Below are positions 32,520-33,891 of a stretch of DNA of 64,000 bases, piece after piece. The notes beneath the pieces were generated by a model that was not told the DNA's origin, made no database searches, and was given only the letters and a program-made list of their open reading frames with translations. Numbering within the stretch: position 1 is the stretch's first letter; every line of letters starts with the position of its first letter. Both the position numbers and the translations under genes were made by a program. The stretch is from Oikopleura dioica (Eukaryota; Animalia; Chordata): the NCBI GenBank assembly GCA_907165135.1, contig OU015566.1:11470001-11534000 (forward strand). The letters run 5' to 3'.

Positions 32520-33242
32520 ATGGTCAACGTACCAAAGACTCGAAAAACGTTCAGTAAGTCGCTGAACAAGCACTCCACCTTCAAGGTAAAAAAAAGATCC
32601 CCGAATCTTATAATTAGCGAATTTCCAAGGTCACCCAGTACAAGAAGGGTAAGGACTCCATCTTCGCCCAGGGTAAGCGTCGTTACGACAGAAAGCAGTC
32701 CGGTTATGGTGGTCAGACCAAGCCCGTCTTCCACAAGAAGGCCAAGACCACCAAGAAGATCGTCCTCCGACTCGAATGCACCAAGGTACAAATTCTTACA
32801 TGACGAAGATCTTACAGACGGCTCGCAAAATAAATCTCAAAATCGAATAGGGAACGAATTTTATTATCAAAATCTCTTTTATGCCTAAAAATTTCAGAAA
32901 TACTTGAATCTTCGACCAATGGAGTTATTTTCGAGAAAAATTAGACAAGTCTCGCAAAGCGCGGTTATAATTTTTATTCTCGAAGTCGCAAGCGGCTACT
33001 CGATTGAACAGAGTCGTCTGTAGGAATTATTCTTCTCTCTAAAATCAGGAGATCTTCCCGGTCGTCTCTGGCTGGGCGATTCTTACTGATTCTCTGCTTT
33101 AGTCTGGCAGACAATGCTAACCCCTCAAGTGACCGGTTTCCCTTTTTAGTCGAAGAAGAGAAAGCTCCAGGTCATCAAGCGATGCAAGCACTTCGAGCTC
33201 GGCGGTGACAAGAAGAGAAAGGGACAGATGATCCAGTTCTAA
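32520..33242 (+). CDS. RPL36A: 60S ribosomal protein eL42 (L36a)
   Basis: [11 protein letters not shown]...[29 protein letters not shown]...[22 protein letters not shown]. Introns 32586-32629 and 32786-33149. Confidence 0.98.
33046..33088 (+). other. Conserved intronic hairpin, copy 1 (RPL36A last intron)
   Basis: CAGGAGATCTTCCCGGTC...GGCTGGGCGATTCTTACTG. Both flanking blocks recur in the RPS27 intron. Confidence 0.75.
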
Positions 33243-33423
33243 ACTGTTCTTGGATTGTCTCTTACTGCCCTCCGGTGGAGATACTTCTCGAATGTTCTAT
33301 TTCTCTTGTGAGATAATAAACTGTCACCAGGAGAAAATATTACTTTCTGAGAACATTAAAAAATCTTCAAAAAAGCCCATTTTTGAATCTTTTTTCATTT
33401 CAGACCGTATCGGATAGTCAAAT

Positions 33424-33891
33424 ATGCCATTGAAGGTCGACCTTCTCAACCCCTCTCTCGACTCTCAGAGACGATGCCACAAGAAGAAGCGGTTAGTGCA
33501 GAGCCCCAACTCCTACTTCATGGATGTTAAATGCCCAGGCTGCTACAAGATCAAGGTATTTTAGAGGAAAAATCAGAGCTTCAGAGGCGCCCCAAATTGT
33601 TATTTTTGAGCCCTTCGGAAACGAGCTCAAATCAACTGATCCACATCAGTTCTTGCCAGGAGATCTTTCCGGTCCATTTTCCCATCATTTCTGAAAATGA
33701 CGCTGGGCGATTCTTACTGCGCAATGTTCGCTCTCGAGCAATACTTCTCAACCTTTCTAGTGACTTGCATTTAGACCGTCTTCTCCCACGCTCAGGTCCC
33801 CTCCGTGTGCACCGGCTGCCACATGGTCCTCTGCCGACCAACTGGTGGTAAAGCTCGACTTACCCAGGGCTGCCAATTCCGAAAGAAGTAA
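33424..33891 (+). CDS. RPS27: 40S ribosomal protein eS27
   Basis: [10 protein letters not shown]...[25 protein letters not shown]|TVFSHAQ...[21 protein letters not shown]. Intron 33556-33774. Confidence 0.98.
33657..33719 (+). other. Conserved intronic hairpin, copy 2 (RPS27 intron)
   Basis: CAGGAGATCTTTCCGGTC-CATTTTC...GAAAATG-AC-GCTGGGCGATTCTTACTG. The inserted segment is itself a perfect 7-bp stem. Confidence 0.75.

Follow-up and report, generated by a model that had tools for sequence, protein, structure and literature searches.

A 64,000-nucleotide (nt) stretch of Oikopleura dioica DNA (assembly GCA_907165135.1, contig OU015566.1, positions 11,470,001-11,534,000, forward strand; hereafter the window, within which all plain coordinates are given) raises the question of why the last introns of two unrelated ribosomal protein (RP) genes, eL42 (RPL36A) and eS27 (RPS27), carry the same hairpin. 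Judged from its sequence, this shared, structured, sense-strand hairpin is a real and previously undescribed RNA element, unannotated and absent from Rfam. We tentatively read the pair as a cis-acting RNA element that is linked to the splicing of both introns and read by a trans factor, and assign this reading a probability of roughly 0.4. The O. dioica genome is among the most compact and fastest-evolving in animals, and its introns are usually ~45-50 nt long with quick turnover. Since the 36 nt of hairpin arms are steadier than the neighbouring RP exons in such a fast-turnover genome, this intronic sequence must do something.

Sequence, conservation and fold of the shared hairpin

Each hairpin consists of two 18-nt arms around a variable tip, and 35 of the 36 arm bases are the same in the two copies, which lie 611 nt apart (Hairpin 1 in the eL42 intron and Hairpin 2 in the eS27 intron; Table 1). 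Each arm is present exactly twice in the 64 kb, compared to ~0.05 occurrences expected by chance, and the arms lie in both last introns where the original prediction, made from the window sequence, had placed them. An intron-to-intron comparison revealed that the likeness is sharply limited to the arms. The minimum-free-energy and centroid folds coincide and reproduce the structure predicted earlier, in which a small internal loop separates the upper stem from a lower stem with a bulged A; the extra apical stem predicted for the RPS27 copy is likewise present. The flanks supply 2-4 further basal pairs, drawn from different sequence in either copy. Single copies are not unusually stable (z = -2.1 and -0.9 against shuffled sequences), and the significance of the element therefore lies in the sequence repeat and in its conservation between lineages, not in folding energy.

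Metagenome contigs of the Joint Genome Institute (JGI) were scanned with the exact 3' arm, and 14 contigs matched. Eleven of the 14 were unrelated, mostly GC-rich and without the 5' arm. Two AT-rich marine-metagenome contigs, L011 and L002, represent the orthologous eL42-eS27 locus of diverged O. dioica lineages, and each contains both hairpins; the eS27 copy of L002 was not matched directly because of one change in its 3' arm. The window, L011 and L002 thus provided six copies (two hairpins in three lineages). Exon identity of L011 and L002 to the window was 94-97%. The figure fell to 59% in the first eL42 intron and, counting aligned columns only, to 48-54% in the intron sequence upstream of the hairpins, where indels span 100-200 nt; outside the arms, the alignable intron sequence as a whole was 48-59% identical. 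Last-intron lengths also differed, with 364, 184 and 187 nt for eL42 (the window and the two other lineages) and 219 (window), 186 (L011) and 382 nt (L002) for eS27. The arms of Hairpin 1 were identical to the window at 36/36 positions in both L011 and L002, and those of Hairpin 2 at 34/36 (L011) and 33/36 (L002), which gives 69-72 of 72 for both hairpins together. The tips showed 43-68% identity and differed in length (7-27 nt). Similarly, among the variants listed from within populations (runs X5 and X6; 95-99% like the window), changes occurred in the tip of Hairpin 2 and in the flanks, and none in the arms. This comparison indicates that the arms are under strong purifying selection.

The sole difference between the two copies, C or U at arm position 12, is common to all three lineages, which places the duplication before the lineage split and shows that the identity of the copies is not due to recent gene conversion. 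Additionally, the eS27 copy has lineage-specific changes that are absent from the eL42 copy. On this evidence, both copies are held by selection and not homogenised.

The consensus fold of the six copies contains 17-19 pairs, with 94.7% of cells paired compared to 34-53% when partners were slid by 1-3 columns. Thirteen of the 19 pairs never vary, three vary on one side yet stay paired (G.U to A-U, C-G to U.G), and in the remaining three, located at the stem's top and base, both partners change; one further change affects the bulged A. Across the six copies and three lineages, every arm change keeps pairing, and three G.U pairs in the stem are invariant. Folding energies were -17 to -21.5 kcal/mol for the sense strand and -9.5 to -15 kcal/mol for the antisense strand. 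Because pairing is kept and the fold is strong on the sense strand only, these results show an RNA structure of the host-gene strand and not a DNA palindrome.

A covariance model was built from the six copies, which score 66-82 bits. With this model, nothing else exceeded 18 bits in the window or in L002 and L011 (8.6 kb of orthologous contigs). Viral contigs gave eight chance matches to the 5' arm, none of them above 20 bits, and the exact 3' arm identified no other Oikopleura-like contig in the JGI metagenomes beyond the eL42-eS27 locus. The two metagenomes in which this locus was assembled gave no further Oikopleura-like contig matching the 3' arm exactly, which makes many identical copies in the genome unlikely; diverged copies may exist elsewhere. 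A dispersed transposon, which the original prediction had named as the finding that would undo it, does not fit the absence of any other copy from the window, the 8.6 kb of orthologs and the JGI scan, nor the strong constraint on the arms.

Placement in the introns and RNA reads

The position of the hairpin was compared among the six copies. The hairpin ends 55-61 nt before the 3' splice site, while anything between 70 and 269 nt separates it from the 5' splice site. From the last paired G of the hairpin to the A of a CUAAC/CUYAAC motif, the distance is 31-32 nt in 6/6 copies. The blocks downstream of the hairpin are in register between copies (GCA at +19-21, AAC at +31-33 and AGUGAC at +40-45). 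With its spacing fixed on the 3' side and these blocks in register, the hairpin is the most upstream part of a module conserved at the 3' side of the intron.

Splicing was assessed with run X24, a poly(A) RNA-seq data set labelled as the same species. Its 3' untranslated region (UTR) loose ends match L002, and X24 therefore derives from a lineage carrying both hairpins. The RNA-seq joints agree with the predicted lengths of the host introns (364 and 219 nt), both of which are GT..AG, and give 44 nt for the first eL42 intron. According to the original prediction, the CAG leading each hairpin follows a pyrimidine tract and looks like a cryptic 3' splice site. The CAG is invariant and paired at the stem base in 6/6 copies, but the tract is not conserved in L011 and L002. 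As stated earlier and as read off the sequence, splicing to the CAG would introduce an in-frame TAG (33100-33102) in RPL36A, while in RPS27 it would add 115 nt and shift the frame. No joint to 33049 or 33660 was found among the joints listed for X24 (the smallest with ~60 reads, compared to 11,000-19,000 for the canonical ones), and all listed minor joints were small shifts around canonical sites. Depth over the hairpin bins was ~3 (Hairpin 1) and ~0 (Hairpin 2), compared to ~20,000 on exons, so the cryptic 3' splice site is not borne out. From the lack of listed joints at the CAG and the near-zero hairpin depth, splicing to the CAG, poison-exon inclusion and retention of the introns each amount to at most ~0.02% in this poly(A) sample, in which nonsense-mediated mRNA decay (NMD) could hide products. 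An unproductive, NMD-type isoform with a premature stop was likewise not seen among the joints listed for X24.

Readings of the hairpin

We favour a role linked to splicing because selection acts on a sense-strand hairpin that is fixed relative to the branch-point region. The hairpins would be paralogous copies of a cis-acting element working on the sense pre-mRNA, in a module that would run from the hairpin through ~18 nt (maybe including a second small hairpin), the GCA block, CUAAC at 31-32 nt and AGUGAY to the 3' splice site. A trans-acting factor would recognise the hairpin sequence-specifically, with the three invariant G.U pairs, the bulged A and the small internal loop as candidate recognition features. 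Placed just upstream of the docking site of the U2 small nuclear ribonucleoprotein, this factor would promote or gate the removal of two unusually long terminal introns, and the output of eL42 and eS27 would thereby be coupled. The original prediction had left a shared splicing switch and a new intronic small RNA family side by side; of what it proposed, the shared structured sense-strand RNA element has stood, and the cryptic 3' splice site is not supported. It is doubtful that the pair represents the first two members of a lineage-specific regulon, in which the hairpin, 32 nt upstream of the branch point in several RP pre-mRNAs, would be read by one factor (perhaps a free ribosomal protein, or an RNA-binding protein that responds to growth) that sets the removal of their terminal introns and thereby RP output. 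As a short RNA of clear extent in a tractable chordate, the hairpin would lend itself to pull-down and mutagenesis.

Several observations weigh against the splicing-linked reading. Both introns are spliced essentially completely in X24, with no regulation seen. Thirteen of the 19 pairs never vary, and full invariance of both helix strands would be unusual for a site read by shape alone. Only two copies are known and these are neighbours, so a link to ribosomal protein genes as a class is unproven. The CUAAC/CUCAAC motifs are putative branch points, assigned by consensus only, and we infer factor binding, the effect on splicing and the direction of this effect indirectly. Further points come from more distant relatives. 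With the eS27 exon-1 open reading frame (ORF) as query, three Oikopleura-like ORFs were obtained and their contigs examined. The eL42 intron of L015 is without the hairpin, and its eS27 intron holds only a weak, reduced look-alike (L015:939-995; 15.6 bits, E ~0.003) of the form CAGG-UCCCGGUU...GCUGGGA-AUUCUU, in which the upper stem CCCGGU/GCUGGG is kept. The eS27 introns of L017 (268-350) and L018 (288-370), from another appendicularian lineage, carry an unrelated, near-perfect 21-bp hairpin (AAUAGGGCUAUUUCAGUUGAA and its complement), and the intron folds at -36 kcal/mol. With a reduced look-alike only in L015 and an unrelated hairpin in L017 and L018, we conclude that only the O. dioica complex has the element as it is now. 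The L015 hairpin may be the ancestral form, and the inverted repeat of L017 and L018 may be a miniature inverted-repeat transposable element (MITE) or a functional analogue.

Unproductive splicing of RP genes is well known in C. elegans and yeast, and to our knowledge the known intronic control of RP genes is gene-specific, with the protein acting on its own or its paralog's pre-mRNA. RP intronic autoregulation (the yeast RPL22A/B stem-loop and RPL30 kink-turn; L10a, L12 and L3 in C. elegans and vertebrates) resembles the present case in having structured RNA in an RP intron near splice signals, and the sequence here is constrained as a protein-binding site would be. The present case differs in that the same element stands in two non-paralogous RP genes, that no unproductive isoform or retention was seen (X24), and that the conserved part is the stem body and not the loop. 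According to three reports on RPL22 (PMC4838235, PMC5755908, bioRxiv 10.1101/2024.08.15.608201), one ribosomal protein can act on several pre-mRNAs via a shared stem-loop. That two unrelated RP genes within a single operon contain the same element, at a set place relative to the branch-point region, would suggest a common controller of RP splicing. Another comparison is offered by the hairpin-closed non-GT introns of Oikopleura; in the same organism group, MITE-derived non-canonical introns have reportedly been found in Fritillaria. As in the present case, a short conserved stem within the intron is seemingly relevant to splicing. In those short non-GT introns, however, the stem pairs one intron end with the other and keeps a set distance to either cut site, whereas the host introns here are long and GT..AG, and the hairpin is internal, local and anchored to the 3' side only.

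The hairpin was also compared with known RNA classes. Rfam at gathering score over the 64-kb window returned only four transfer RNAs (tRNAs), all elsewhere, and no match to the hairpin; at E<=10 over 32400-34000, only noise was returned. A literature search found no paper containing 14-mers of either arm, and nothing on the hairpin element was found in the literature on Oikopleura introns, hairpins and microRNAs. Like intronic small nucleolar RNAs (snoRNAs) of RP genes, the element lies in highly expressed RP host introns, ~55-60 nt upstream of the 3' splice site, a distance similar to the optimum for intronic snoRNAs. It differs from them in its variable length (44-64 nt) and in being without C, H and ACA boxes. 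The C box RUGAUGA occurs in none of the six copies, and CUGA follows only the three eL42 copies, with CUGC or CUGG in eS27. The internal loop measures only 2-4 nt by 1-4 nt and forms no pseudouridylation pocket, and the AGACAA after the possible second small hairpin is found in the window only and not in L011 or L002. The earlier statement that no complete C/D or H/ACA box set is visible thus holds, with RUGAUGA in 0/6 copies, no H/ACA arrangement and no Rfam match.

In canonical microRNA precursors the stem measures ~33-35 bp, of which ~11 bp form the basal part beneath the Drosha cut. The present hairpin has ~17-19 pairs in its body and only 2-4 more basal pairs in 6/6 contexts. It shares with intronic microRNAs and mirtrons its conserved arms, free loop, intronic location, sense strand and paralogous copies, but differs from mirtrons in not lying at the intron ends, and from microRNA hairpins in its stem, which is too short and without basal extension, and in the lack of an Rfam microRNA match. 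We therefore weighed the hairpin as the precursor or body of an intron-encoded small RNA (a short hairpin RNA, a microRNA-like RNA or another stable RNA), for which the two genes would be no more than hosts, and regard this as unlikely. Invariant arms with a tip varying from 7 to 27 nt form a conservation profile typical of microRNA hairpins, and two paralogous copies in adjacent host introns, with a sense-specific fold, resemble a cluster. However, the first copy has only ~18-22 paired positions and a 6-nt loop, without the ~11-bp lower stem needed by Microprocessor, and conservation ends exactly at the 18-nt arms, so that a 22-nt product would differ between the copies at its end. The Rfam, box and literature results above also speak against a small RNA, and the fixed distance between hairpin and branch point would go unexplained. 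If the hairpin were nevertheless a short hairpin RNA, it would represent an unusual small-RNA class.

Three further explanations start from the CAG, from mobile DNA and from the DNA sequence itself. A regulated alternative 3' splice site at the leading CAG, masked or exposed by the hairpin and lowering both genes through NMD-targeted products, would explain the invariance of the CAG, and its pairing at the stem base, in each of the six copies. Splicing to it would place an early stop in eL42 and shift the frame in eS27, and RP unproductive splicing has a known example in the RPL22 case (PMC4838235). This switch is nonetheless highly unlikely, with no joint listed to either CAG and hairpin depth of ~3 and 0 although the X24 lineage has arms matching the window, with both whole arms invariant and not the CAG alone, and with an upstream pyrimidine tract that is not conserved in L011 and L002. 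O. dioica introns often contain MITE-like insertions, and the same eL42 intron holds a polymorphic stretch of ~180 nt with a 15-nt inverted repeat; together with the spacing of just 611 nt between the copies, this recalls a palindromic element, either mobile or duplicated locally (MITE- or introner-like), that survives as a relic without function. Such a relic is barely plausible for arms that are more conserved than exons while the surrounding intron is saturated, and for copies that evolve independently yet stay alike, with no further copies found. The presence of two copies in 64 kb, the arms with G.U pairs and a bulge, and the poor antisense fold are also unlike the terminal inverted repeats of a MITE or dispersed repeat. 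A DNA-level element, such as a pair of transcription-factor sites or an operon enhancer within the intron, would account for two strictly invariant 18-bp blocks with variable spacing, as expected of two protein-binding DNA sites. We consider it extremely unlikely, because the ~17-pair complementarity between the blocks would then be a coincidence, substitutions are tolerated by wobble pairing on the sense RNA only, and the place of the blocks is fixed relative to splice signals and not to a promoter.

Several other candidates were rejected. By inspection, no kink-turn consensus could be drawn on the hairpin, and minus-strand ORFs over both hairpins read the 5' arm in different frames, which does not support antisense coding. 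Judged by eye only, the hairpin did not fit well enough as a 5'-splice-site or U1-like duplex, as a pairing partner of the spliced leader or as a mimic of the 18S 3' end. A 12-nt identity (AAUCAGGAGAUC) between the eL42 copy and the tRNA-Thr(AGU) gene at 20860 is absent from the eS27 copies and is probably due to chance. The 5' side of Hairpin 1 is complementary to the eS27 5' splice site over 20 nt (75%), but this match is not kept in L011.

The eL42-eS27 locus and neighbouring features

Pfam was searched exon by exon and not with joined proteins. The translation of eL42 exon 2 matched PF00935 (Ribosomal_L44, L44e/eL42), and the translations of both eS27 exons matched PF01667 (Ribosomal_S27e). 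The eL42 protein is without three of the four zinc-ligand cysteines of other eukaryotes; TFSKSLNKH replaces CxxC, and only the Cys of LEC is left. In X24, reads with loose 5' ends reading CCATTTTTGAGTCCGATTTCGATTGTCTAAC lie directly before 32507 and 33402, and the CCATTTTTGAGTCCGATTTCGATTGTCTAAC string is present in a paper on O. dioica trans-splicing (PMC6883708). Both mRNAs are trans-spliced to the O. dioica spliced leader, with acceptors just before these two positions. The poly(A) end of eL42 lies near 33321, ~80 nt upstream of the eS27 trans-splice acceptor (X24). Since both mRNAs are trans-spliced and the first ends so close to the acceptor of the second, eL42 and eS27 form an operon-like pair. 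Their adjacency is also kept in L015, a contig of a more distant appendicularian. The coordinates of the genes, introns and intronic features are given in Table 1.

Table 1. Genes, last introns, hairpins and downstream intronic motifs of the eL42-eS27 locus (positions within the window)
Feature	Position	Strand	Remarks
eL42 (RPL36A) gene	32520..33242	+	exons 32520-32585, 32630-32785 and 33150-33242; stop TAA 33240-33242; junction reads of run X24
eL42 last intron	32786..33149	+	364 nt, GT..AG, ~18,800 junction reads (X24)
Hairpin 1 (eL42 intron)	33043..33092	+	arms 33046-33063 / 33071-33088, tip 33064-33070; 3 copy-specific basal pairs from the flanks
Possible second small hairpin, eL42	33093..33111	+	UCUGCU/GGCAGA; three-lineage consensus fold, 6 pairs, one broken in L011; weak
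Branch-point-like CUAAC, eL42	33117..33121	+	last paired G to A, 32 nt; A to 3' splice site, 29 nt; same offset in three lineages
AGUGAC block, eL42	33128..33133	+	offset +40 to +45 as in eS27; second branch-point-like motif
eS27 (RPS27) gene	33424..33891	+	exons 33424-33555 and 33775-33891; stop TAA 33889-33891; junction reads of run X24
eS27 last intron	33556..33774	+	219 nt, GT..AG, ~11,300 junction reads (X24)
Hairpin 2 (eS27 intron)	33653..33725	+	arms 33657-33674 / 33702-33719; 4 basal pairs from its own flanks
Hairpin 2 apical extension stem	33675-33681 / 33693-33699	+	CAUUUUC/GAAAAUG
Possible second small hairpin, eS27	33725..33740	+	UGUUCG/CGAGCA; GCUCA/UGAGC at the same place in the other lineages; weak
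Branch-point-like CUCAAC, eS27	33747..33752	+	A lies 32 nt past the hairpin; CUUAAC and 31 nt in L011 and L002
AGUGAC block, eS27	33759..33764	+	+40 to +45, in register with the eL42 intron

The eL42 intron of the window also contains ~180 nt (within 32810-33025) that are absent from L011 and L002. A 15-nt inverted repeat (32810-32824 / 33011-33025) flanks this stretch, which shows structural polymorphism in the DNA runs X5 and X6 (loose ends at 32864-33015). A young MITE-like insertion, directly upstream of the invariant hairpin, is the probable explanation.

Outside the introns, the 3' UTRs of eL42 and eS27 have a common 23-nt block around the poly(A) signal (33310-33332 and 33929-33951; ATAAACTGT.ACCA.GA). 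The block is kept in L011 and L002 and may therefore serve 3'-end processing in both genes. Two more distant appendicularian lineages (L015:640-700, L017:50-100 and L016:230-290) have in common a conserved block of ~30 nt (ATCCAAAATAGGARTCAKGAYCGTAATCAA) upstream of the eS27 trans-splice site; O. dioica is without this block. Elsewhere in the window, the four tRNA genes lie at 20860-20933 and within 24022-24661, and two of them form an identical head-to-head pair at 24022-24093 (-) and 24188-24259 (+).

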